From Selaginella moellendorffii (lineage: Eukaryota > Plantae > Lycopodiophyta): a stretch of DNA of 64,000 nucleotides. Position numbers and translations under genes: made by a program. Below the pieces are notes generated by a model that was given only the letters and a program-made list of their open reading frames with translations, did no database searches and was not told where the DNA came from. How positions within the stretch are numbered: the first letter of the stretch is position 1; the number at the start of each line of letters is the position of its first letter. The stretch lies in contig NW_003314348.1 in the NCBI RefSeq assembly GCF_000143415.4, positions 624,062-688,061 of the forward strand, given 5' to 3'. Shown here in pieces: positions 6,402 to 58,494 of the stretch.

Positions 6402-9400
6402 TTACTCCTCCTCCCAGACTTGGTAATCGCTGCCTTGACCAACGCTTCGTTTCCAATTTCCAATGAGATCGTTCTGCTTGGATGGGTTCCAATCGAAGCG
6501 ACCGAGTTTTACCACCAGCTGCTCCCCAACTTTCGCAACGTAGCCATCGTTATTTGCGTGGAAGATTTTTACAGGACTCCGGCAGTTGATGCCAGTGCGA
6601 TTCCTTGCTGCGATGAGATCCACAATGGGATCACGCAGCCCAAAGTCATAAAAGTGATCGTAGAAGATCACAGGCTGTGGCAACAAATAAAGGTGAGGAA
6701 AAACGCACTGCAATATATTCGTTTCAAAGAGAGACTTACCGTCCCAGGATGTGTTAGTATGTATGCGTAGCCTTGAAGGAGTTTGTCACGAGGAAATGGC
6801 CAATGACCCTGTGCCAGAATAAAAACTTTCAGTCACTTCAGGAACTCATGCAAGACGGCGTACCTGAGTTGATCCTGTGTCGTGGTTCTCAAGGAATGTT
6901 ACCGCTCTCGAAGGCCACCAGCCCATAACACCAGGGGGTTTCTGTCGTGGATCAATGAGTCTCCAGTACTCGTTGTGCAATGCAGCATGAAGAATGCCCT
7001 GTAAAACAGATCAGTCAGGCACATTCTTTTCTAGTTTTGGGTGCACACCTTTGTTGTCACGTCGAAAGCAGAGGAAGTTCCTCCAGTTGCATTGATCCAA
7101 TCGATGATACGTTGTCTATGAGCATCTTTACGCAGAAGAAAAGATAAACATTAGATGAGGTAAGTCATGGATTTATCCTCAGGCTTACCCTGGTTATATG
7201 CAACGTTTCCACCTTCGTACAGCAAACTGTCCCAGTACTCGCCGATCGCAAAAGCAGGTTCACTGGCTTCAATATATTCTTTCACGTAACCTCCCCAAAA
7301 TCCCCTGTGTTTAACGAGAGAGAGTGTCAATCGATATATAGCATCAAGTTGTCTAGACCGCTTACCTGACAAAGTCTAAACGCCAGCCATCATATCCAAT
7401 CTCTGTTTTCAGCCAATCCAAGTATTCTTTGATGTCCTTTCGAACGAAGGCCTGGGAGTGATCAATATTGGGAGCAGCATGGAAAATATCACCTGAATAC
7501 GTTAAAAGATGTTAAATAACTGTTGAAGAAAATGCTGAACTTACCGCTCGAAGGATTTCCTCGCCCTTGAAAGTTTGGATCATCGTTCACTATAGCCTCT
7601 GGTCCCCAAGAAAGTTTTCCTCCAAAAATATTCCAGACGCCATTTGAATTCTGTGATTTTTGTCGCTCAAAAACAGTCAGAATTACTGGTGAGAGGACAC
7701 ACAATGCTGCTTACTTGTTTGTAGGCACACCGGTGATTCAACACAACATCACCTAAGACCTGTCGCATTTAGAATAGTTAGAAAGCACCTAGGCCAGTAG
7801 TTGAGTTTACCAAAAGGTCGTGCTTGTGCATTTCTTGAATACAATGTTTTAACTCGTCCATGGATCCGTATGCTGAATTGAGGTTGTAGAGATCCACCGG
7901 CATGTAGCCTACACAATAGAAAAAAAAAACTTGATCCGTTACTCTGTTCAGCAACCGATTATTGACATGAAACCTTGTGGAGCGACGGATTCTGTAGGTG
8001 GAGGAAACCACACAGTTGTTATGCCGGACTGCGAAAGATCAGCAGCTTTTGGCGCCAGGTCCTGATACCATCTCTTGCGGCAACTCTCCCAATTGAAGCC
8101 TTGAAACTTAAAACAGAAAGAAGAATCTAATGATTTTTTGCAAAACAAGGCTCAGAAATATACATACCACGATTTCACGACCAGACCCTGTCCCTGATTC
8201 TGTAGGACAAACAAAGTGAGATGAAAGATTATAAAGAGGAAAGAAAGAAAAGAAGATCACTGTACCAGAAAAGAGAACGTACCAGGTTTTTCTTTTATCA
8301 CTCTTCCTTTCCTCTTCGTAATAGTTGTTTGACCAAGAGCCTGCTCCAGGTCCCTTCGTTGTTTGTCCAGAGTTTCCTTCGCTACCACGTCCTTGGAAAA
8401 CAAGTCATCTTGCTTCACTTTCGCCTTTGCAACGGACCATACTTCCTCCAACGAAGGAAGCTCAAGAGGTTTCGAGGTCTCTGTATCCGCAGAAACTGTT
8501 GTCTGATGTCTAGGAGGAATTCCTTGCATTGCTGCTTGTATTCTCTTCTTCATCCAATCTGGTATCTCCCTTCGTGGACCACCTTCAACGAGTTCTGCGA
8601 TCTTATCTCCGCCTAGCAGTGCCGTCATACGACCATCTGAAAATACCACTGACCACTCAGCATCGGATCTCTGAAGCAACCCCTCGCTATTGAGGGCTCT
8701 CTCCTTCCAAGCCAGCAGCGAGGCTTCGGAAGCAGCAAGCGCGTTCTCGAAAGCTTGAAACCTTCGCAAATTCGCTTGCTCTTTAATTTTCTTGGCTTTC
8801 TCGGACGCCTCCATGGCTGCTTGTAGAGCTGCTAGCTGCGCCTCGAAAGCAACCTTGAGCGACTCCTCCCTCGCGCTTGCTGTGGCTCTGAGCGACTCGA
8901 CTGTCTCGTTAAACATGGAAGCGCGCTCTTGAGCAGCATCCCCGACTTTCTGACGGAGTTCCTGAATAGTAACGTCCGCCTTGGCAGCTCGAGCCTCCGC
9001 AACTTTGGCTTGAGACTTTGCAGCGTCGGCAGCAAATTGGAGTCGCGAGAGATCGTCCTTTGCAATCTCCAGTTGTTTCTCGAGAGAAGCCACCGATTCT
9101 TCCAGAGTCGACAGCAGAAGCTCTGGTTTCGGCACCTTCTCAAGCAGCAGGAGCTTCTGTGCTAGAGTTTCTTCCGCCCGCTGTGCACACTCCTTGGCCG
9201 TCTCTAGCGCCTTTCGAGCCTCGTCTGCTACAGCTTCGAGCTCCGTAGCCACCGATACAGCCGCGTCACTGGCAGCATCTTTGACAGTCTTCTCCACAGT
9301 AAGATTCGCGTCGGCAACCGACGTCTTTTCCACCACGTCTTTGCGCTTTGCACTGCGCCTCGATATCTCCTCCAGTACAAACTCGGCAATCTTCTGGGCC

Positions 9401-9949
9401 TTCTTGTTGATGTCTTTGACGTTTTGTTTCTCCAGCGCAGCAATCTTCTCTTGCAAAACGTTTCCCAGCTCCGACTTGAGTGACTCATTGCTCCAGTCAC
9501 TCGTAGACGCAGACATTTGCTTTGTCACTGTCTTCCTCTTGCTATCCTCCACTACCGGTGAATCACGTTGCAATGCAGCACTGGAACACGAATTCAAAAA
9601 GAAGTGAGACACGTCTAAAGCTTAAAGGCAAACGGGAAAAAAGTAAAGAAATTTACTTCACAAAATGCGTATAGCTCAAACGCTTCTGGATACCGGTGGC
9701 TCGTACTCCCTGCCGATTTCCGGGTATGAACTGCGAGGAAACAGTGAATCAATATCCACAGAAGAGATCGATCGAGATCTAAATGCGAGGCGAGAGAATG
9801 CGGCGCTATCGATCCTGCCAAAACCCTCGACGCACTGGATCCGTCGCAATCGGACCTCCAGACACCGCGCACGCAAGCGCCGCCGCGACACAAGCCGCTT
9901 TACATACCGTGGAGCAGCTGTGAGGCCGAATCACGGCAGCCGACGCCAT
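6402..9949 (-). CDS. AMY: Alpha-amylase (GH13) with a long N-terminal coiled-coil extension, probably plastid-targeted; multi-exon, start uncertain
   Basis: Spliced exons give GREIV|[50 protein letters not shown] and C-terminal [10 protein letters not shown]...QVWEEE* (stop 6402). A ~430-aa A/E/K/L-rich exon (~8284-9570) splices in frame via EKP|[14 protein letters not shown] 9949 is tentative. Confidence 0.92.
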
Positions 9950-10310
9950 AGCTCCGCCTCGCCCTTGCTCTGCCTTGACGATCCTGGAAGTAATAATATA
10001 AGGACCTCAAGGAATGTAAGGAAAACGCGCACATCGATTACGATGCAAACACGTGGCGCAACAGGATGCATTTGGGGCGCTTTACACTTTTCCACAGCCA
10101 TATCTCCCTCCTTTCAGTTTTTGCCAACGTGGATCAACGACGTGTCAGACTTGACCTCCAATCAATGCAGGAAAAATGTTGCATGGATATTCTAAGAGAT
10201 AGGCTCGTGGGTTTCTAAATTTAAAGAGATAGAAACTATAGCATGGTTGATCATACAATCGAACAAGGAGACATTGAAAGAGATAGAAACTATAGCTCGC
10301 TCATGGTTGA

Positions 10311-40731: not shown

Positions 40732-41134
40732 ATGACCACCGGCCATTGCGGACCATAGGGACGCCATCCCCGCCGTCCATGCGCCCCATCCAACGGCCGC
40801 CCCTGGTCCTTGTCTCTGTGTAACAGGGGCCCCGTGATTTGGAGTTAATTGAGCCACTGCTCTGGCAGGGAGCCGGAATGGGTCTTTGTCTTGCGCCTTA
40901 CAATGGCGTGTGGTATATGTATCATGTCTGGGTCTTCAAAGGAGAGGCCTGGAAGCTCGCAGCTTGAGCCAGGATATAAGTTTGAGTCGAGAAGGTAGAT
41001 CACTGCCAAGAAATCGGGGTCTTTTAGTGCCTGTGGATTCAAGGAGCTGAGATTTACCCCTGGAGAAGGAAAAACCAAGTTTTGATAGCGGTAGCAGTAG
41101 TAGCAGCGGTAGCAGCAGCAGCAGCAGCAGTGGT

Positions 41135-42388
41135 ATGGCCATCTCGCCGGTGCTTGATATCCAATTGCCCAGAGTTCCTACGCTGTTTCGATGCCCCATC
41201 TCGCTGGAGCTCATGAAGGACCCGGTGACGCTGAGCACCGGCTTGACTTACGACCGGAGCAGCATTGAGAAGTGGTTTGATGACGGCCACCACACCTGTC
41301 CCGGAACCATGCAGCTGGTGAAAGTCCGCGACTTGGTCCCCAATCACACGCTCCGGAGGCTCATCCAGGAGTGGTGCGTCGCCAACAAGTCGAGAGGCAT
41401 CGAGAGAATTCCCACTCCAAAGCAGCCCCTGGACGACGAGCAAGCCGGCCACCTCGTCCGCCAAATCTCCTCCGCGGAGCTCTCGGGACGCGCAAAGAGC
41501 CGGCTCCTCCGGAACCTCCGAGCGTCGTGCAAAGAGAGTGACAAGAACCGGAAGTGCATTGCCGGTGCCGGGGCGATCCCGGCGTTGAGCGGCTTGGTGT
41601 CTTCGTTCCAGCCCAGAATAAGTTTCGACAGGCCTTCGAATCTAGAGGACCTCCAGTGCTGCGAGGACGCGGTCGCAGTTCTCGTAATTCTGCTACCACT
41701 CGAGATCGAAAGTTTGAGAAAGTCCATCATCAATCCGTCGCTGCTGGCTGTTTTATCCTGGATCCTCCACCGACGTAACACCGAAGGCCAGATCAACGCT
41801 GCCCGCCTGCTCGAGCTTGTGGCGACTGACGATGAATCCAAGTCGATGATGGGAGCGACTGAGAGGTTGATACCGGGACTTGTCAAGCTTGTCAAAGAGG
41901 ACAGTGCGTATCCGCGAGCAGTCAGGGCGAGCCTGACCGCGTTGCTGGCCATCGTCTCCTGCCGAAAGAATCTCGTAAAGGCTGTCCAAGGTGGTGTGGT
42001 GCCGCCGTTGATAGAACTCCTCTCCGAGGCCAGCCGACTCAACACCGAAAGAGCTCTGGCTGTGCTCGAGTTCGTGGCCAGATGCGCAGAAGGACGGGAA
42101 GCTTTGATGGATCACAGTCTGTCAGTGCCGATGCTGGTGAAGATAATTCTCACGGTTTCGGATCTGGCGTCAGAGCGAGCAGTCGGGATCCTGTTGTTGA
42201 TGTGCCAAGCTGATGACTCTGTCGTCCAAGCAGCTGCCAGCGAAGGTGCTTTTACTCAGATGATTCTTCTCATCCAGGCCGATAACACTTCGGAGACCAA
42301 TCACCGGGCCAGACAGTTTCTTAAGTTGCTTCGCGGAGCTGTTCCTCGAGAGTGCATGCACGACTTTGCCTTCACAATGCCGTTTTGA
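41135..42388 (+). CDS. PUB: U-box/ARM E3 ubiquitin ligase (CMPG1/PUB20-29-like), single exon
   Basis: VPTLFRCPISLELMKDPVTLSTGLTYDRSSIEKW...PNHTLRRLIQEWC...IERIPTPKQP followed by ARM-like helices. Confidence 0.95.
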   Translation: MAISPVLDIQLPRVPTLFRCPISLELMKDPVTLSTGLTYDRSSIEKWFDDGHHTCPGTMQLVKVRDLVPNHTLRRLIQEWCVANKSRGIERIPTPKQPLDDEQAGHLVRQISSAELSGRAKSRLLRNLRASCKESDKNRKCIAGAGAIPALSGLVSSFQPRISFDRPSNLEDLQCCEDAVAVLVILLPLEIESLRKSIINPSLLAVLSWILHRRNTEGQINAARLLELVATDDESKSMMGATERLIPGLVKLVKEDSAYPRAVRASLTALLAIVSCRKNLVKAVQGGVVPPLIELLSEASRLNTERALAVLEFVARCAEGREALMDHSLSVPMLVKIILTVSDLASERAVGILLLMCQADDSVVQAAASEGAFTQMILLIQADNTSETNHRARQFLKLLRGAVPRECMHDFAFTMPF

Positions 42389-49440: not shown

Positions 49441-51870
49441 CTAGAAATCGTCTTCAATCTCGTCACACTCGTCGGCAGCACTGGTGATAACTTTTGGAGA
49501 TCTCGGCTTCCAAGCGTCGCGAGTGAACGCGGAAATATTTCGCAGGAATGGAATGTACTCGGTTGCCTGCTCAACCGGACCAATATTACTATCTCTCAAC
49601 GACGCAAAGATCTCCCTCTGCAGCACGAACCGAGAAGAAAAAATAAAAACTTTTGCGTTAGCTCGGATCCACCAAAAGATGTGAAAGCATCACCTTCTTG
49701 CTTGATAGCGAGCGCTCAACTTGCCAAAGCATGGGACTTCTCAGCGTCTGCCATCTGTTTAAAGAACCAAGTTTAAGTTGTCCGGAGAAAAACAAGAAAA
49801 TAAGAAGCTACCTTCGAGGAGCAGGGTGTGTGTTACCAAAAAGAACACCCCGTGCAGCTATAGAAGCAGCCGCAGCTTCTCCAAGTTGCGAAGCATTCGT
49901 CCATCCGGAATCTAAGAGGGGCCCTCTCGACTGCCAGGAAAATCTTGCACCAACGAGGTCTGCGTCACTTATGTACTGGATGATGTCCGCAACGTCTTCG
50001 ATGGCATCGTCATCGACAAAGTCTGGCACTGCACAAAACGATCAAGGATTATAATCAAGAGCTGAGCCAGTACCATTCTCGTGGAGAAAAGAGACGAGTG
50101 TTGAAGCTTCGGCGTGCGACTGGGATATGACTAGCTCGGGATCTTTCATTTGCAAGGGTGGTCTTTGATACTGCTGTTGAAGTGGACACGAAAGTTTTTC
50201 ACCTGCAAAAAAGAAATGTCGGTCACGATTCTTAGACAACAAGTACCAACCTGACTCAGACTCCGCGTCGGCCACTCGCTTGTTGTGCAAGAATTTTCCA
50301 AGCGCATGAAATAGAGATAAGATGTGATCCCTACCGCATTTGGAACCATACTGTTCTTTGGGAGGTTCGTCGTCTGAAGCTCCGCGAACTTGCTGGCGCT
50401 TTCGTCTTCTTGACTCGGATTTATCGGATTTCGGACTATTGAGGCAGAGAAATTGGAGATGTAGGATGGCGTGTCTGATATCTCCCGCGGCGGTTTGAGC
50501 AATTTCAGCCACCATTTCGCTAGGTACACGGCATTTCTTCGCTTTGACAAGATTAGCCAAAACTTTCTTAATGGCATTTACAGTGATCGGGTTGAAGGCA
50601 ATCTGTGAAATCGAACTGATGAGGAGTGAACAAAGCGGAAGGAGAGAACAAAACAAAAAAAAAAAACCTTGGAGGCTCCTCCACTCTCGAGTGTTTTTAC
50701 TATCTCTCCCATGCATCGTGCCATTGAACTTCCTCGATAACCATCGTCAGCCACATCTGTAACAACTATAATGGTTGGAAACTTCGCACCCGCAAGTAAC
50801 TGGCGAAGTGATTGGAGTAGCTGCCTTTTCTTGTCCTCCCCATTTACTAAAGGTACGTCGTCAATGAGAACGAATTTCATTCTCCTAACCGGAGCATTTA
50901 GTGGAAGAGAAGGAAACTTGGTTGTTTTGTCCAAAAATGTTTCAAAATCCTTCAGCTTTGAACTATATTTTGATCCTAAAAACCATGTCGAGGAAAAAAA
51001 TTCAGCAAGTTCTTGTCAAGTGTTACCTAGTGTATCATTGTGTAGATGCTCCTTCCAGAGAACAGGCGTTGGAGCAGTCCACTCACAAAGCTCGGCATTC
51101 ATCGTGTTGGCTAAGACTCGCACAACAGTCTACAAGATCCACCGTCTTTCAGAAACGAAGAAAGGAAAAGAAAAAAAAAACTGAAGGAAAGAAAACACTC
51201 ACCTTCTTACCGACACCAGCAGGTCCGGTGATCAACAAAAGCTTGCATGAACACTGCAGTGGCAAACAATTTCAAACGAATGTTATGCAAGAGTTAGTGA
51301 AGGGCGAGAGGAAAAAGAGGTTTTACCCAGCCTTACCCCCAAGGGGTTGTCGATTTGAGTTTCCATCCATTGTCTCACTTCTCCAACCTGGAGGAAGAAA
51401 GAAAAAAAAAAAAACCACTGTTAGAAAAGAGACAGGGAACGACCAGAGCAAAAACTAGCGTTGAAAGAACTAAAACCAAAAGAATCGTAGCGATGGTGAA
51501 GAATGTAAGTGATTTACCTTCTTGCTATGAACTGCTAGATCACTCACACAGGCCGGCCGAAACTTGTCGATCCAAAGATTATCAGAGTCTTGCCGATTAT
51601 CTGGAAATCTTAGCTCGCATTGCATTCCATTGTCCATTCCAGCTCACCTCGAGTGCTATCCACCTGTAGAAACGCCATATCCTCCTCGACTCGCTCGAAC
51701 GGCGACCGCGAATCCTGCCGACGCACCCGCATTGGGAAAAAAGGAAGCGAGAAGAGAAGGAGCTACGAAACCTGGCTGCTCTTCTGCGAGGAGAGCGATA
51801 GCGGCAAGCGATCGTCGTCGTCATCGTCGCTCTCCTCGAGCGCCAAAACGTGGCGCTTACGCTTGGCCAT
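49441..51870 (-). CDS. RAD17: Cell-cycle checkpoint clamp loader RAD17, multi-exon
   Basis: MAKRKR...; LWIDKFRPACVSDLAVHSKK; LITGPAGVGK; VLIDDVP; IAFNPIT; GDIRHAILHLQF; GRDHILSLFHALGKFLHNKR; FLHEN; ends EIEDDF*. Confidence 0.94.
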
Positions 51871-51961
51871 AACCTAGGAACCCTAGAAGCCTGCCACGCG
51901 TCAAAAATCTAGCCCATATAAGATAGAACGAAAGCCTCGCTTGTATCTATCTAGCGCAGCG

Positions 51962-52657
51962 ATGAGCTTCTTCGTGCTCTTGGCCTTCGTTTTCTCTTCC
52001 ATTCTCGCGAAATCTCAAGCCCAGATTTCTGGTCAGTTCGATCGCTCGGTTTTTTCACTGGAATTCCCAAACTTCTCACTGTTTTCCTGCTAAACTCGTG
52101 TGTGTGTTTATGCAGAGCTTTGCAAGGAATGTACCACTCTCTTCGACAACAAACACAACCATTCGGTGGTAAAGTTTGGGCAGTTTATGTGCGAGAACTT
52201 CTGCGACGAGCACGGAAAGGTGGTGGGGCTAAACTCCGTGGCTGTGAATGCGGAGGAGATGCTGGTGTGTGATAGATGCAGGAAGAGCAAGGGCCAGTTT
52301 ATGTGCTCGCTGTGCAATCCAGAAGAGAGATCGAAGATCCAGGAAGAGGATGAAGACGACGACGATGACGATCTGCCCTATGGAGCTCGAAGAACACAGT
52401 TCTTTTGGACATCGAACGAGACCTCGTGTGACACCTGCCGGGATCGTCTGAAGTCGCCATTCTGCTTCCAGTGCAGCCTCAAGGAAGAGTGTCGAAGTTG
52501 CAACAACACCGTGGAATGCAAAACGTGCGATGTCTTTCGGCAGCACACGGTTCATGTCTCGAAGCTGTGGCTCGGCGAAGACAAACCATCCAAAGGAGTG
52601 GATGATCTTGGAAATGATCGCCAGAGTAATCCAAGCACCACCGGAACTAGAAGTTGA
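51962..52657 (+). CDS. Secreted CxxC-rich orphan protein 1 (2 exons: 51962-52031, 52117-52657)
   Basis: Exon 1 MSFFVLLAFVFSSILAKSQAQIS (signal peptide), phase-1 GT-AG intron, exon 2 with 7 CxxC + 1 CxxxC and an acidic tract. Confidence 0.85.
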
Positions 52658-53441
52658 CATGTTGATACTCGAGCTTAAGTTCTTAAGAACAAATTAAAGT
52701 TATTATTAATTAATATAAAATTCAGAACTACATTGCTCTTTTTTTACTTCCAGTTAATTTGCTTGATCCATTTTCGTATTGATTTGTTTTTCAAAAAAGT
52801 GTTGTTATGAGAGTTTGCTTAATTGCAATTGGCTGAAGCGCTCCAATCCTAGTTGCGCTGCTACAAACAAATTCAGGAGGGATGTGGAGCATGGGGTCTA
52901 CCTGATAGTTTTAATACACTTTAATTTTTCTTATCTTTTTTAAAATAAAATTGAACCATGAGAAAAATACAAAAAAATCAAATGTACAATGGGGCCATTA
53001 TTGGGCCCCTAACCTTATAGTTATTTTTAATTATTGATGGTCCCTTTATAAACAACTCTGTTCTGTTGTGTTCTGTAAACTCGTGCTTCATTAAGTGATC
53101 TCTGGAGTTCTGATAGAATTTTCTACAATTTTGTAACTGTAACAATTGCATGACTTTTCGAGGTTGATATACGGACATAGAAGAAAAAAATATGTATCAA
53201 ATTCTGCATTGTCAACGCTATGTGGCTCAAGCTTCGCACGAAAATGTTCCACATAGAAAGAAATAAAGCTAAAGTTTTGTGACATGGCTACATTCTATTG
53301 CCCTAATAAACAGTAATAAAAAAACAAATACATTGGTGTAGTGTCGTAGAAACCAACGTATCTCTCTATAGTATTTAAACACACCATAGCTAAAAACTTT
53401 ATTTTTTTTTTCTTCTTCTTTCCTCTTGTTAATATACATCA

Positions 53442-54057
53442 ATGGCGGGCTCTCTTTTCACTCTTTTCGCTCTTGCTCTTTTCTTCTTGATTGCAGCACA
53501 GCAGTCCCAAGCTCAAGAAGGTAAATTCAATCGAGCTTTCTCAAACAAAATTCAATTTCTAACTTCTTCTCGCAGAGTATCTAAAACGAGTTTGCGATGG
53601 CTGCACTACGACAAAAAACAAGCTCCTTTGCACGCTCTGTGACACTGCACAGAAGCAAGCCGCAGCAAAACCTCCAACCATGGTGACAGAGATCCCTCAA
53701 GAGGAAGCCAAGAAGGAGGCCCTGGGCATCGCCCAAGCCGCCAAGCCAATCCACTACACAAGTGCCAAGGTCGAAAAGAAGGACTGCGCGGAGAAATGCC
53801 CCAAAGGAAGCATTACATACTACCTCGACGAGTGCACCGAGTGTAGGACGGAAGTCACCACCCTTCCAGTCTATCCCGATGGAATGGACATCTCCAAGAG
53901 CTACTTTTGCACCAAACTTTGTGCCAGCAACTTCTTCAAGGGATCCAAGATGTGTAAGTTCTGCTGGGCAACATCGCCATCGCCATCTCCATTGCCTTCT
54001 CCGGCCCCGGCGCCGACGCGAATGCCAAAGAAGAAGAACCCGCCTAAACACCACTGA
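53442..54057 (+). CDS. Secreted CxxC-rich orphan protein 2 (2 exons: 53442-53520, 53576-54057)
   Basis: Exon 1 MAGSLFTLFALALFFLIAAQQSQAQE, phase-1 intron, in-frame exon 2 EYLKRVCDGC...CTLC...CAEKC...CTEC...CTKLC...CKFC with an SP/AP tail ending KHH*. Confidence 0.85.
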
Positions 54058-54563
54058 GTGTTTTTAGATCCAGCGTAGTTTAGTCGAGGAAATAAGGAAA
54101 AGCACGGACCTGTGTGTTGTTTCCAAGATAGGCCTAGTGTTTGATTCGATCTGGTTGTCTGTGCAGTAGTGATAGTTTGTAGTAGTTTGATTCTTCGCAA
54201 TAAATCTGGCAAAACTTTCTTCCTTCCAACTTTGTTCTTCACGACCAAGTGGCGATCAGTCTGTTCCAGAGCCATGAGCGCAAGGAAATCGCTGGAACGA
54301 TGTTTTACCTCAGTCGTCTCGCCGCGCTAGTTTGTCCGTGCATTGCCTTCACTTCGGTTCGTATCGCCCAAGCGCACTTAGAGAGAACTTTAAATCTGTC
54401 TCAGCCTAGAACATAAAAGTTTGTCACGATTGTCAAAAACAGATGAAGATCACGAAGCGCCAAACCAAAGTTTTTGTCCAAATGTCCGGTTGAATCATGA
54501 CTTTTCCCAGACAAGGAGCTCCATAAATTCTCTTGTTCCGGGAAGCTTTATCCAATCTCTCGC

Positions 54564-55136
54564 ATGGATCTGGCAAGAGTTATTAGTATCGTTTTGGTTC
54601 CCCATGCCTTGCTTCTCTTGGTGCAGTCTCACGCACAAGGCTTACCAGGTTAGTGCTCTACAAAACTTCCGCGTTGATCATTCTTCTCGCTATCTGTGTC
54701 TCCAGATACATCTGAGCTTTTCGCTGAGATTCCAAGGCCTCTAGAAAACACAACTTGTGAGAAATGCACCGACCCAATGACAAACACTCAGTGCCTCGGT
54801 TGTAGCATCAAAAGCATTTGCCACAAATGTAACACCTCCATGGTATGCCTAACCTGCATGAATTTCGGCATCGAGAACATGTTAGAGAGTTCGTTTGTCG
54901 AGAAAAGTATCAGCAAGGACCTGAAAGAAACTGTGTGTAAGCTATTTTGTCGACGCGAGATGGACTTCTGGATATCAAGATCAGCGCTCTGCCGTTCTTG
55001 TAGCTCTTTACCTCCGTCCCACTCCCCGGTTGCATCTCCAATACCACCTCCCTTTTGGGGTCGTCCCAGACAGAAACGTCAAGCTCCAGCTCCAGCTCCA
55101 GCTCCAGCCCCTGGATATCACGGATACCATCACTAG
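54564..55136 (+). CDS. Secreted CxxC-rich orphan protein 3 (2 exons: 54564-54648, 54706-55136)
   Basis: Exon 1 MDLARVISIVLVPHALLLLVQSHAQGLP, phase-1 intron, exon 2 CEKC..CLGC..CHKC..CLTC..CKLFC..CRSC with a Pro-rich/(AP)5 tail ending YHH*. Confidence 0.85.
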
Positions 55137-55206
55137 TTTAGCGCCCGAGAAGAAACATAATAATTCACTGGCATACCTTTGTCAGTTGTCTGGAAATGAG
55201 AAAATT

Positions 55207-57447
55207 TTATGTCACTGCCTTTGTCACGTTTGAAAGTAGCACGTATGGTCCCGAAGAAGCACCTTCTTTCACCCCAAAAATCTTTTGAGATATTCTCTGT
55301 GCTCGTTCCAAGTCATTTGAGGTCTTACAGCAGCCGAGCAAGCTTGTCCACGCTACCGGCGTTGGCTCAAACGGCATAAAACTGAGCACGTCCTCTGCCA
55401 GCTCCAGCTTTCCAACTCTCCCGAGAAGGTCTGCGATGCACATGAAGTGATCGGCACTGGGCTCTATACCGTGATCTTGTCTCATGACGACGAAGAACTC
55501 GATGCCGGTTTTGAGCAAGCCTGCGTGAGCACAAGCCGAGATTATGGCGATGAAGGTAATATAGTCGGGAAGCTCACCTTGGAGGGTCATATCCTGGAAG
55601 ACTTTGAGAGCTTCCGAGCTACGAGCACACTCGGCATAAGCTGCGATCACGGCACTCCACGAAACGACGTTGGGATTGTTGATGGTGTTGAACACGTCTC
55701 TCGCTCTTTGTAAACAGCCACCTTTCGAGTACATGGTGATGAGAGCGTTTTGGACTCTGATTTGCTTCTCTAGTCCAGTCCCGAGGATGCTCGCATGGAC
55801 CATCTTCCCATCTGGTATCGAGCAGAAGTCCAAAACGCTCACAACTGTGATCGCTTCCGGCTTCACACCTTCCAAGTTCATGGCTTTGAACAGCCTGAAA
55901 GCCTCACTGCTGTGTCCATTCCGGGAGAGAGCTCCGATCATCACATTCCACGGTACTATATCCTGTCCTTGCGAACTTCCTGTGACTTCTTCGAAGACCT
56001 TCCATGCGTCTTGCAGGCTTCCACACCTCCCGTACATGTCCATAAGAGCGTTGGCAAGAAGACCGCGTCTAGGAAGTCCTGCCTCTGTAACAACACCATC
56101 AACCATTCTAGCTTTAGAGAGCTCACCAAAGCAAGAGCACGCATCAATAGCACTTAGAAACGTTACCTCGGATGGAGCCGTGCCGTCGAGGTCCATAAGT
56201 CCCAGGATTTGCAAGCCTTCCTCTCCAAGCCCGTGCTGTGCAAACACTGCGATCATCGCAGTCCATGCTATAACGTCTGGGTTTTCAATCTCTCCTAGTG
56301 TTCTTCGAGCATCCCGCACGCTCCCACACTTTCCATACGTGTTAACAAGAGCAGTCCCGACGACCACATCGCTTCCAAGTCCATCCTCGTAGACTCTCCC
56401 GTGTATTTCCCTGCAGCAACTCAAATCCTTAGAACCAGAGAAGCAATCAACGAGGGTGATAAAAGTGACTTTGTCTGGCTTCGTACCTGATAAACACATC
56501 AAGTGGAAGAGCTCCATCGCGTTCTTGCCACTGCCAAGTTGACGAGCGTATGACGCGATCATAGTGTTCCAAGAAACCACGTCCTTTGCAACCATGGCAT
56601 CGAAGAAATTTCTAGCTTTGTCTGCGAAAGCGTTGCTGGCATAAACCCACAGCATGCTGTTCCACGAAACCAGATCTCGCTCGGGCATCTCATCGAAAAT
56701 CCTCCTCGCTTCGTCGGGACAGCAGTGGCCGAACAAGCCGATCAATCCATTTCCAATCTTCAAGTCGGCGGCAAATCCAGCACTCTCAATCATCGTCTGG
56801 AGGATCTTCACCTTAGCTCTTGAGCAGAAGCCCGCAGCGCGGGAGGAAACGTTGAGAATGATCACAAAGGTGATGGAGTCCGGCTTAAATCCTTCCAAGT
56901 TCATGCGTCCAAAGTGCTCTATGGCCTGTCCCTCTTGCCCATTCTCGGCAAATGCGGATAGCATCGCGTTCCACGTTGTAGCATTCTTCCCAGGCGTCTT
57001 CTCAAAGATCTCTCTCGCCCGCTCAATCTCCCCATGGCTCGCAAACGCTTTCACAATAGTCGTCCATGACACCACATTCTTCTCAGGCATCGCCTCAAAC
57101 ACCTCCACCGCGTCCCACAAATACCCATTCTGGGCAAATGCCTCGATCAGGATCGTCCACGAGAACACATTGGGGCTCTTGATCCGGGCCAGCGCCGATC
57201 GACAACCCTGGACGTCACCGCAGCGCCCATACATCTGGATCACAAGATTCCCCAGCAGCCTGTCGCCTCCCAGCCCGGATCCGAGGATGAGATCCTCCGC
57301 TTGCCTGGCCTCCGCGATCGCGCTGAGCTTGCCGCATCTCTGGACGAGCGCCGCGAGATTGGAGAAAATGACGCCGCTAGCGCAGCTACCGCATTGCTGG
57401 ATCGATTCTTTCACCCGGAATAGGGTTACCGCCAAGGGCTCATCCAT
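55207..57447 (-). CDS. PLS-class PPR protein with E domain (no DYW)
   Basis: P-L-S triplets, HFMCIADLLGRVG, WTSLLGCC, PYVLLSNV. First ATG 57447. Confidence 0.95.
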   Translation of the reverse strand: MDEPLAVTLFRVKESIQQCGSCASGVIFSNLAALVQRCGKLSAIAEARQAEDLILGSGLGGDRLLGNLVIQMYGRCGDVQGCRSALARIKSPNVFSWTILIEAFAQNGYLWDAVEVFEAMPEKNVVSWTTIVKAFASHGEIERAREIFEKTPGKNATTWNAMLSAFAENGQEGQAIEHFGRMNLEGFKPDSITFVIILNVSSRAAGFCSRAKVKILQTMIESAGFAADLKIGNGLIGLFGHCCPDEARRIFDEMPERDLVSWNSMLWVYASNAFADKARNFFDAMVAKDVVSWNTMIASYARQLGSGKNAMELFHLMCLSGTKPDKVTFITLVDCFSGSKDLSCCREIHGRVYEDGLGSDVVVGTALVNTYGKCGSVRDARRTLGEIENPDVIAWTAMIAVFAQHGLGEEGLQILGLMDLDGTAPSEVTFLSAIDACSCFGELSKARMVDGVVTEAGLPRRGLLANALMDMYGRCGSLQDAWKVFEEVTGSSQGQDIVPWNVMIGALSRNGHSSEAFRLFKAMNLEGVKPEAITVVSVLDFCSIPDGKMVHASILGTGLEKQIRVQNALITMYSKGGCLQRARDVFNTINNPNVVSWSAVIAAYAECARSSEALKVFQDMTLQGELPDYITFIAIISACAHAGLLKTGIEFFVVMRQDHGIEPSADHFMCIADLLGRVGKLELAEDVLSFMPFEPTPVAWTSLLGCCKTSNDLERAQRISQKIFGVKEGASSGPYVLLSNVTKAVT

Positions 57448-57660
57448 GCTCAAAAGTGACACGTAAGGGAGCCACCAGGATTCAAACAGCCACGTCTGCC
57501 TCCATCTTGTGCCACGTGGGATTACACTGCCATCTCATCTCCACGTACCAGAAAATTAGTGCCACGTAGGGCAGCCAGCCCTCCACGTACCAGAAATTTT
57601 CTATGTAAAAATCTGTACAACCTATGGAAAAGCTTGAGCGTGAGAAATTTGGGCTGGTTC

Positions 57661-58045
57661 TTAGCCAGTGGAATTTCCAGAGATATAGATCCGATGGACC
57701 ATCGAATTGGTGAGTTTTCTCCGGCAAGTCGGGCACCTCTTCTGGGCCTGGATGGCGGATAGAATGCAACTCCCGCAGAACAAATGCCCACAAACCGTGG
57801 ACGTCTCGTTCTTCATCGTGTCGAAGCAAATGCCGCAAGTGAGCGATGGTTCCTTGGCCGGAGGAGGCGCTGGAGCAGCCATCTTCTTCTTCTGCGAGAC
57901 GAGATCTCGCAACTTAGCTGGGAGCGAAGAGGAACATATGTAGATCTAAGTTGGAGCTCTTTACCTGGGGTCTCTCGTACACAACCTCGCAATCTTCCGC
58001 GGTGAGATCGATCGTTGTGGGATGGACACGCTTTGATCTGTGTCG

Positions 58046-58076
<31 letters not shown>

Positions 58077-58494
58077 GGCTGCTGCTGCTGCTGTCGAGCT
58101 CTAGATTGTAGCTTTCTCGATTTTCGTGGAGGCTTCGACCCTATACGAAGATCAAGAGTGAAGAAAAGAAAAAAACCAAAGTTCTCAGCGAGATAGTAGA
58201 AACGAGAAGAAACTTTGTACCGGAAAATCCCAATCGCAGCTGTAGAAGGTCTTCCTCGGTATGATTTTCATCGCCCACGGCCTAAAGAGGCAAAGCAAAT
58301 TAGAAAAGGCAAAACAAAAGGAGAGGAAAGTTTTTTCTTCTTCTTCTCAACCAAAGAAATCTAACCTGAGCAAACGATCTGGGCGAACAGACTTGGACAT
58401 CGTCATCGTCGTCGAGGATAACAATCGCCGCGCTGGTTGAGGCATAGCCAGGCCCTTTCAACGACGACGAACTCACAGAATCAGGGCTCGACAT
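57661..58494 (-). CDS. RNF4-like SUMO-targeted RING E3 ligase (STUbL), 4 coding exons plus a probable 5'UTR intron
   Basis: SIM-like IVILDDDDD and TIDLT, polyQ, C-terminal C3HC4 RING CGICF...STVCGHLFCGSCI...CPTCRRKL...HRIY. Confidence 0.88.
58045..58093 (+). repeat. (GTT)n/(GCT)n microsatellite encoding polyQ in the STUbL
   Basis: gttgttgtt...ggctgctgctgctg reads CAG/CAA codons on the minus strand. Confidence 0.9.

Follow-up and report, generated by a model that had tools for sequence, protein, structure and literature searches.

The subject of the present analysis is a cluster of three neighbouring genes, referred to here as g1, g2 and g3, in the genome of the lycophyte Selaginella moellendorffii. 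The cluster lies within a 64,000-nucleotide stretch of contig NW_003314348.1 (assembly GCF_000143415.4, positions 624,062 to 688,061 of the forward strand); this whole stretch is called the window, and positions are those of the window unless another record is named. An initial annotation, made from the sequence alone, had proposed that the three genes are co-oriented members of an undescribed family of divergent, secreted, cysteine-rich proteins with one architecture, in which an exon encoding a signal peptide and the residues S(Q/H)AQ is followed by a short phase-1 intron and a single Cys-rich exon. This arrangement was recovered in full when GT..AG introns were enumerated behind the three ATG codons. 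On the plus strand, g1 is encoded by 51962–52031 and 52116–52657 (ATG at 51962, stop codon ending at 52657, 203 amino acids), g2 by 53442–53520 and 53576–54057 (ATG at 53442, stop ending at 54057, 186 amino acids), and g3 by 54564–54648 and 54706–55136 (ATG at 54564, stop ending at 55136, 171 amino acids). The introns, all of phase 1, are 52032–52115 in g1 (84 nt), 53521–53575 in g2 (55 nt) and, as proposed, 54649–54705 in g3 (57 nt); their donor sites read GTCAGT, GTAAAT and GTTAGT respectively, and their acceptor sites are pyrimidine-rich and end in CAG. TATA-like boxes are found 40–70 nt upstream of the ATG codons of g2 and g3, and another is visible upstream of g1.

The translations of g1 and g2 are identical in every letter to SELMODRAFT_427014 and SELMODRAFT_427015, both annotated as “hypothetical protein”, and the cluster members annotated on the second haplotype are SELMODRAFT_429711 and SELMODRAFT_429712, on GL377684.1. 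g3 is unannotated in both haplotypes, probably because a 325-amino-acid minus-strand model of a pentatricopeptide repeat (PPR) protein overlaps it in the allelic annotation. A tblastn search of the whole window and of the allelic locus with the three proteins found no extra copies or relics.

The N-termini encoded by the three first exons look like cleavable signal peptides, as had been supposed. Their 11-residue Kyte-Doolittle maxima, a heuristic measure of the hydrophobic core which is not the output of a signal-peptide predictor, range from 2.6 to 3.1 (2.74 in g1), and cleavage is predicted after KSQA in g1, QSQA in g2 and QSHA in g3. All three proteins therefore have Ser at −3, Ala at −1 and Gln as the next residue, and this cleavage motif, S-(Q/H)-A↓Q, is located just upstream of the intron, from which its end is separated by three codons in g1, two in g2 and five in g3. 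The predicted mature proteins are 183, 162 and 147 amino acids long, with isoelectric points (pI) of 5.1, 8.9 and 8.3 for g1, g2 and g3 respectively. They also differ in their C-terminal regions. In g2 an SP/AP-rich tail (53974–54018, plus strand), which by composition is an arabinogalactan-type glycomodule, is followed by a basic KKK..KHH end, and it aligns with the Pro-rich tail of g3 (55008–55112, plus strand), which includes (AP)5 and runs on to a GYHGYHH end; in g1 such a Pro-rich tail is lacking and an acidic linker is present. The codons for (AP)5 in g3 form a GCTCCA microsatellite at 55070–55118, which on the minus strand specifies Leu-Glu repeats (LELELEL) and is of equal length in both haplotypes.

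The large exons contribute the cysteines, which number 16, 12 and 12 in mature g1, g2 and g3, and all 40 of which occur in CxxC or CxxxC pairs. The numbers of pairs are even (8, 6 and 6), and the pairs can be grouped into 4, 3 and 3 four-Cys units respectively, each unit consisting of two pairs spaced by 5–19 residues, with low-complexity linkers between the units. Three recurring modules had been described in the initial annotation, and each is present as claimed. Module A, CxxC-x8-CxxC-x5-CxxC-x5-CxxC, occurs with identical spacing in g1 (52427–52528, plus strand) and g3 (54756–54857, plus strand), where each copy is preceded by an N-glycosylation sequon (NET or NTT) and contains a second sequon at the matching place after the third CxxC. 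This spacing has exactly two occurrences in the window and none in 100 shuffles, and the two copies are identical at 14 of 38 residues: the eight Cys and six others, among them the first Asn of the conserved sequon. Module B, VCDxC-x8-C(S/T)LC, is shared by g1 (52268–52315) and g2 (53593–53640), both on the plus strand. The unit which underlies it, in the more general form C-[DE]-x-C-x8-C-x-x-C, occurs four times in the family (twice in g1 and once each in g2 and g3), and module A consists of this unit with two further pairs. The third module, described as CxxC...CxxxC...CxxC, is found in all three proteins in units that combine a CxxC with a CxxxC pair: it takes the form CxxxC-x11-CxxC twice in g2 (53785–53964, plus strand) and CxxxC-x13-CxxC once in g3 (54936–55001, plus strand), and it appears in g1 in the reversed order CxxC-x19-CxxxC.

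The question of whether genes with so little overall identity are related was addressed by comparing the local alignment score of each pair with the scores obtained for 2000 shuffles of the partner sequence. The Smith-Waterman score of g1 with g3 is 95, as against 32 ± 5.5 for the shuffles, none of which reached it; the scores of 61 for g1 with g2 and 66 for g2 with g3 were reached by 2 and 3 of the 2000 shuffles respectively. The corresponding BLASTP E-values are 5e-7 (g1–g3), 4e-4 (g1–g2) and 6e-4 (g2–g3). Judged by their sequences, the three genes are true paralogues, and the proposal of a divergent tandem family is upheld by the shuffle tests together with the common architecture. Taken with the common exon-intron plan and cleavage motif, the alignment scores are most simply read as the outcome of tandem duplication, after which the copies diverged strongly and lost or gained modules.

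The locus on the second haplotype provides a further view of the cluster, since g1, g2 and g3 are all intact there, with identical lengths and with every Cys kept; in both haplotypes, g1 and g3 retain complete open reading frames (ORFs), canonical splice sites and TATA-like boxes. A comparison of the haplotypes in terms of the ratio of nonsynonymous to synonymous rates (dN/dS), which had been suggested as a check on the family, was carried out using Nei-Gojobori counts. Nonsynonymous and synonymous differences number 6 and 4 in g1 (dN/dS 0.38), 8 and 7 in g2 (0.31) and 3 and 1 in g3 (0.85), and the pooled counts of 17 and 12 give a ratio of 0.39 (p = 0.012 in a one-sided binomial test). For the three genes as a set, this amounts to modest evidence that they are under constraint; g3 alone is uninformative. 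The haplotypes differ far more in the AT-rich spacer that separates g1 from g2 (52660–53440) than in the genes, with 87 differences or gaps in 52750–52999 as against 1–7 per 250 nt in the genes.

Transcription was examined using contigs that resemble transcript assemblies, drawn from four runs of four studies and aligned on 51850–55250. Contigs of this kind do not show the strand directly and drop rare transcripts; 20 runs share words with the stretch, none of them more than 0.36 of its words. Those of g2 begin at 53412–53416, about 35 nt after the sequence TATTTAA at 53372, and in three of the runs they contain the GT..AG joint across 53521–53575, which confirms the splicing of the signal-peptide exon onto the Cys-rich one. 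The expectation of spliced transcripts thus holds for g2 and is left without support for its neighbours: g1 and its intron are uncovered in the contigs of the four runs, and the joint of g3 is unseen in them, at a locus which lies under a spliced antisense transcript. g2 is the only family member whose expression and splicing are supported by contigs. At positions 53688, 53775, 53815–53816 and 53838 of g2, the contigs of all four runs carry the letters of the second haplotype (including the substitution T107V) and those of the window are unseen, which suggests an allele bias or a sample lineage nearer to the other haplotype.

No relatives of the family were found outside the species. Searches of Pfam with the whole exon-2 proteins and with seven single modules returned only sub-threshold noise (the CofB pilin, DUF3795, Zn_ribbon_11, PHD_2, DZR, Fer4 and an ELAPOR TNFR-like model), of which Zn_ribbon_11 had E = 0.036 and 14.1 bits against a cut-off of 24, PHD_2 had E = 0.097 and 12.6 bits against 28, and DZR had E = 1.4 and 9.6 bits against 27.3. 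Searches of the PDB with the three sequences and with a profile of module A gave nothing below E = 0.3. In a word-indexed search of 5.8 billion proteins, g1 and g2 matched themselves only and g3 matched nothing, not even itself, from which it follows that g3, being unannotated, is not in the collection. An exhaustive phmmer search with g1 of 1.84 billion cluster representatives returned g1 alone, from collections whose coverage of other lycophytes is uncertain. Short Cys-rich modules are difficult to detect by search. The ESM Atlas gave no usable feature matches for g1 and g2, its structure matches having TM scores of at most 0.32, and for g3 it gave feature matches of 0.75–0.78, all of them zinc fingers, in a range (below 0.8) that a third of shuffled proteins also attain. 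When the Cys-spacing pattern of module A was back-translated and sought in metagenome contigs, at least 120 loci were found, almost all of which are simple TGY-periodic repeats; among the loci listed, the best BLOSUM score at non-Cys positions is 8, as compared to 17 for g1 with g3, and none appeared related. In the literature, no paper was found that names the four SELMODRAFT locus tags of the cluster, and work on the cysteine-rich peptides of Selaginella was found to concern known families only.

These results agree with two further proposals of the initial annotation: that the proteins belong to no characterised family, since the Pfam searches and the PDB sequence and profile searches were empty, and that they are lineage-specific, which stands so far, with self matches at most in the exhaustive and word-indexed searches. 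On the basis of the sequence searches, the family appears to be an orphan, restricted to Selaginella as far as searched. It resembles the defensins, thionins, nsLTPs, snakin/GASA proteins, RALFs, EPFs, STIG1, DUF26 and Bowman-Birk proteins in that its members are small and predicted to be secreted, with an even number of Cys, and in that such families are often arranged in tandem clusters which diverge fast and have a signal-peptide exon, but it differs from them in having Cys only in spaced pairs, with no CC or CxC motifs. Membership in the plant Cys-rich families defined in Pfam was rejected, because at E ≤ 10 neither the exon-2 proteins nor the single modules matched any defensin, thionin, LTP, GASA, RALF, EPF, STIG1, DUF26, Bowman-Birk, hevein or prolamin-like model.

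The best explanation overall, to which slightly more than even credence can be given, is that the cluster encodes a Selaginella-restricted secreted family whose proteins are built from four-Cys hairpin units. One ancestral gene with two exons, specifying a signal peptide and a Cys-rich region and separated by a phase-1 intron, would have been tandemly duplicated, and its products would enter the secretory pathway. The signal peptides, the conserved N-glycosylation sequons, the even Cys pairs and the hydroxyproline (Hyp)-type tails all argue for this destination, which in turn favours disulfides as the state of the paired Cys, since paired Cys normally form disulfides in the oxidising secretory pathway. 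By analogy with the plant alpha-hairpinins, whose precursors likewise combine a signal peptide with a cassette of four-Cys modules (PMC7191063), each four-Cys unit may then fold in the endoplasmic reticulum into a small hairpin with two disulfides in a ladder (C1-C4 and C2-C3), and the stapled units would constitute compact, stable extracellular modules. The SP/AP-rich tails of g2 and g3, with their basic or His-rich ends beyond, would receive Hyp-O-arabinogalactan, non-contiguous SP/AP dipeptides being those which direct arabinogalactan addition according to the Hyp-contiguity rule. g2 and g3 would in that case be chimeric glycoproteins associated with the wall or the apoplast, tethered or solubilised by the arabinogalactan-type tail. 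As to function, a role in apoplastic defence or in wall-associated binding is a guess by analogy. We infer secretion, disulfide topology, glycosylation and role alike, and we conclude overall that the family is real and orphan, that it arose by tandem duplication, and that its Cys-rich proteins, which are predicted to be secreted, have units that are probably disulfide-stapled hairpins.

The likeness of g2 and g3 to the chimeric arabinogalactan proteins and Cys-rich extensin-like proteins of the hydroxyproline-rich glycoprotein superfamily consists in the predicted signal peptide, the Cys-containing domain and the non-contiguous SP/AP dipeptides. They differ from these proteins in that the Pro-rich part is C-terminal and comprises only about 15–35 residues, a glycosylphosphatidylinositol signal is absent, and the Cys domain, which has no Pfam match, corresponds to none of those known from chimeric arabinogalactan proteins, such as fasciclin, plastocyanin-like, nsLTP or PAC/Ole e 1; g1, moreover, has no Pro-rich part. 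By sequence composition, it is in their short tails only that g2 and g3 qualify as arabinogalactan-protein-like chimeras.

Several observations weigh against the explanation given above. g1 has no contig cover in any of the four runs, and the g3 locus is transcribed antisense with its own joint unseen. Single-sequence AF2 models of exon 2 are poor, with predicted local distance difference test (pLDDT) scores of 39 for g1 and 46.6 for g3, and the models in the ESM Atlas have scores of 0.42 and 0.48. The dN/dS of g3 taken alone is 0.85, a value derived from 4 differences only, and the acidity of mature g1 is unlike that of typical cationic antimicrobial peptides. The CxxC spacings, finally, fit Zn(Cys)4 knuckles equally well, and zinc fingers are included among the sub-threshold Pfam and Atlas neighbours.

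The last of these points leads to the main rival of the disulfide reading, in which the four-Cys units of secreted or ER-resident proteins form no disulfides and instead bind metal, as Zn(Cys)4 knuckles or ribbons or with Cu or Fe, perhaps because an intracellular zinc-finger module gained a signal-peptide exon. It accounts naturally for the presence of every Cys in CxxC or CxxxC pairs grouped in fours, for the fourfold recurrence of C-[DE]-x-C-x8-C-x-x-C, which resembles the start of B-box fingers, and for the His-rich C-termini of g2 and g3, and the closest of the neighbours below threshold belong to the zinc ribbons and the RING or PHD fingers (Pfam E 0.036–1.4, ESM 0.75–0.78). A comparison with treble-clef and zinc-ribbon fingers (B-box, RING and DnaJ-type CxxC repeats) reveals the same CxxC runs grouped by four or eight ligands and the same unit start, C-[DE]-x-C-x8-C, but g1, g2 and g3 lack His ligands and Gly signatures, and they carry signal peptides and N-glycosylation sequons, to which g2 and g3 add Hyp-type tails; these last three features indicate an oxidising secretory pathway. 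Nor do the neighbours carry much weight, given that the ESM scores are of the size attained by a third of shuffled proteins and that B-box is absent from the Pfam results for the exon-2 proteins and single modules even at E ≤ 10. Identity with a zinc-finger family was rejected, no zinc-finger hidden Markov model having reached its gathering score, and metal binding by the units is on balance unlikely.

Another improbable alternative, which concerns the genes rather than the fold, is that g2 is the sole working member, that the duplicates g1 and g3 are silent or in decay, and that g3 has been overrun by a 3′ extension of the transcript of the neighbouring PPR gene. The lack of contigs for g1 and the ceiling of 0.36 on the words of the stretch in any listed run are as this alternative would predict, as are the absence of g3 from the annotation of both haplotypes and its dN/dS of 0.85. 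The RNA at the g3 locus also fits. The joints there read CT..AC on the plus strand, and on the minus strand all of them are canonical GT..AG introns; they belong to an antisense spliced transcript at 53646–55206 (minus strand), which covers g3 and the 3′ end of g2. Its introns are 54044–54109, 54261–54308, 54406–54465 (alternative), 54570–54645 and 54854–54920 (alternatively 54741–54920), with a further probable one at 55111–55176 (minus strand) in the record coordinates of one contig. The first exon of g3 is almost wholly contained in the spliced-out intron 54570–54645, and antisense exons overlie the entire gene. Against decay, the ORFs, Cys, splice sites and TATA-like boxes of g1 and g3 are complete in both haplotypes, and g1 has a dN/dS of 0.38; the silence, for its part, is that of contigs which drop rare transcripts, in four runs, and genes of this type are usually expressed in a restricted set of tissues, for instance reproductive ones, or on induction.

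The antisense RNA appears to originate from the PPR gene, a neighbour outside the family which occupies 55207–57462 on the minus strand as a continuous ORF of 751 codons. Contigs of 1.7–2.2 kb run from 54945–55069 on into this gene, and the simplest view of the antisense RNA is that it extends the 3′ end of the PPR transcript over a long stretch with several introns. The transcript appears to pass the stop codon by about 1.5 kb via five or six canonical minus-strand introns. Downstream of that stop codon the spliced RNA contains no ORF longer than 65 amino acids and, by eye, no PPR E/DYW-like sequence. An mRNA with introns downstream of its stop codon is normally a target of nonsense-mediated decay, and the introns found here mean that this PPR isoform may be regulated or non-coding. 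The PPR ORF of the window ends eight codons past a PYVLLSN motif, and nothing resembling an E2/DYW continuation was found beyond its end. In the annotation of the other haplotype this ORF is split into two models of 325 and 358 amino acids (7347–8825 and 8854–10006 of the allelic locus, both on the minus strand), one of which extends antisense into g3. Beyond the PPR gene, a C3HC4 RING-finger exon is located at 57664–57945 (minus strand). Two ORFs with runs of Cys elsewhere in the window, at 57918–58193 (plus strand) and 40848–41177 (minus strand), derive from TGC/TGT simple repeats and are unrelated to the family.

A rather doubtful reading is that the proteins are polyprotein precursors whose linkers are cut, releasing hairpin peptides of 20–40 residues that are antimicrobial or inhibit proteases. 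The obvious model is provided by the alpha-hairpinins (EcAMP1, Sm-AMP-X, Tk-AMP-X and MiAMP2), which have the motif Xn-C-X3-C-Xn-C-X3-C-Xn and a helix-loop-helix fold with C1-C4 and C2-C3 disulfides, and whose second type of precursor consists of a signal peptide and a cassette of several four-Cys modules (PMC7191063). The layout of g1, g2 and g3, with a signal peptide, then 3–4 four-Cys units separated by low-complexity linkers, and then a short C-terminal tail, matches this second type (PMC7191063). Each hairpinin module likewise has two close Cys pairs with a loop of roughly 10–13 residues, comparable to the CxxxC-x11-13-CxxC units of g2 (two) and g3 (one), which are one residue short of the alpha-hairpinin motif, and the low-confidence AF2 model of the g3 unit shows two helices, one on each Cys pair. 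There are also differences. The defining motif requires CxxxC on both sides, and no unit here has two CxxxC pairs, for which reason alpha-hairpinin identity was rejected; modules A and B are built of CxxC pairs alone, with loops of 5 or 8 residues, and are modelled as strands. There is no sequence similarity, the units within one protein are unlike one another whereas the cassettes of hairpinin precursors are near-identical, and the present genes have an intron whereas multimodular hairpinin genes are intronless (PMC7191063). No evidence of processing was found.

A more elaborate proposal, which appears very unlikely, is that an intracellular-type zinc-knuckle unit, C-[DE]-x-C-x8-C-x-x-C, was captured behind a signal-peptide exon to produce a new extracellular class of tandem Zn(Cys)4 or redox-active CxxC proteins, with g3 also under natural antisense control by the 3′ extension of the PPR mRNA. 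It is highly improbable that the signal-peptide exons are mis-joined and that the true products are intracellular zinc-finger proteins from the large exons alone, as the density of CxxC typical of such proteins might lead one to think: the exon joint seen in the g2 contigs is precisely that of the model, no ATG stands close to the 5′ end of the large exon in g1 or g3, and the cleavage motif and intron phase are repeated in all three genes.

Lineage-specific clusters of secreted Cys-rich genes are common in plants, and the family of four-Cys hairpin-unit proteins favoured here is an undescribed Cys scaffold within this well-known kind; the cluster opens no long-standing question. What is gained is the recognition of g3 as a gene missing from the annotation, a correction to the opposite-strand PPR model that overlaps it, and an RNA picture which is new here, with the intron of g2 confirmed and the g3 locus found to be transcribed antisense. 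The secreted Cys-rich proteins of lycophytes have barely been studied, and the cluster is a compact example of the reshuffling of modules following tandem duplication. Provided that the family is real and its proteins are secreted, it would represent a new plant extracellular Cys scaffold, one made of pairs only and arranged in four-Cys units.

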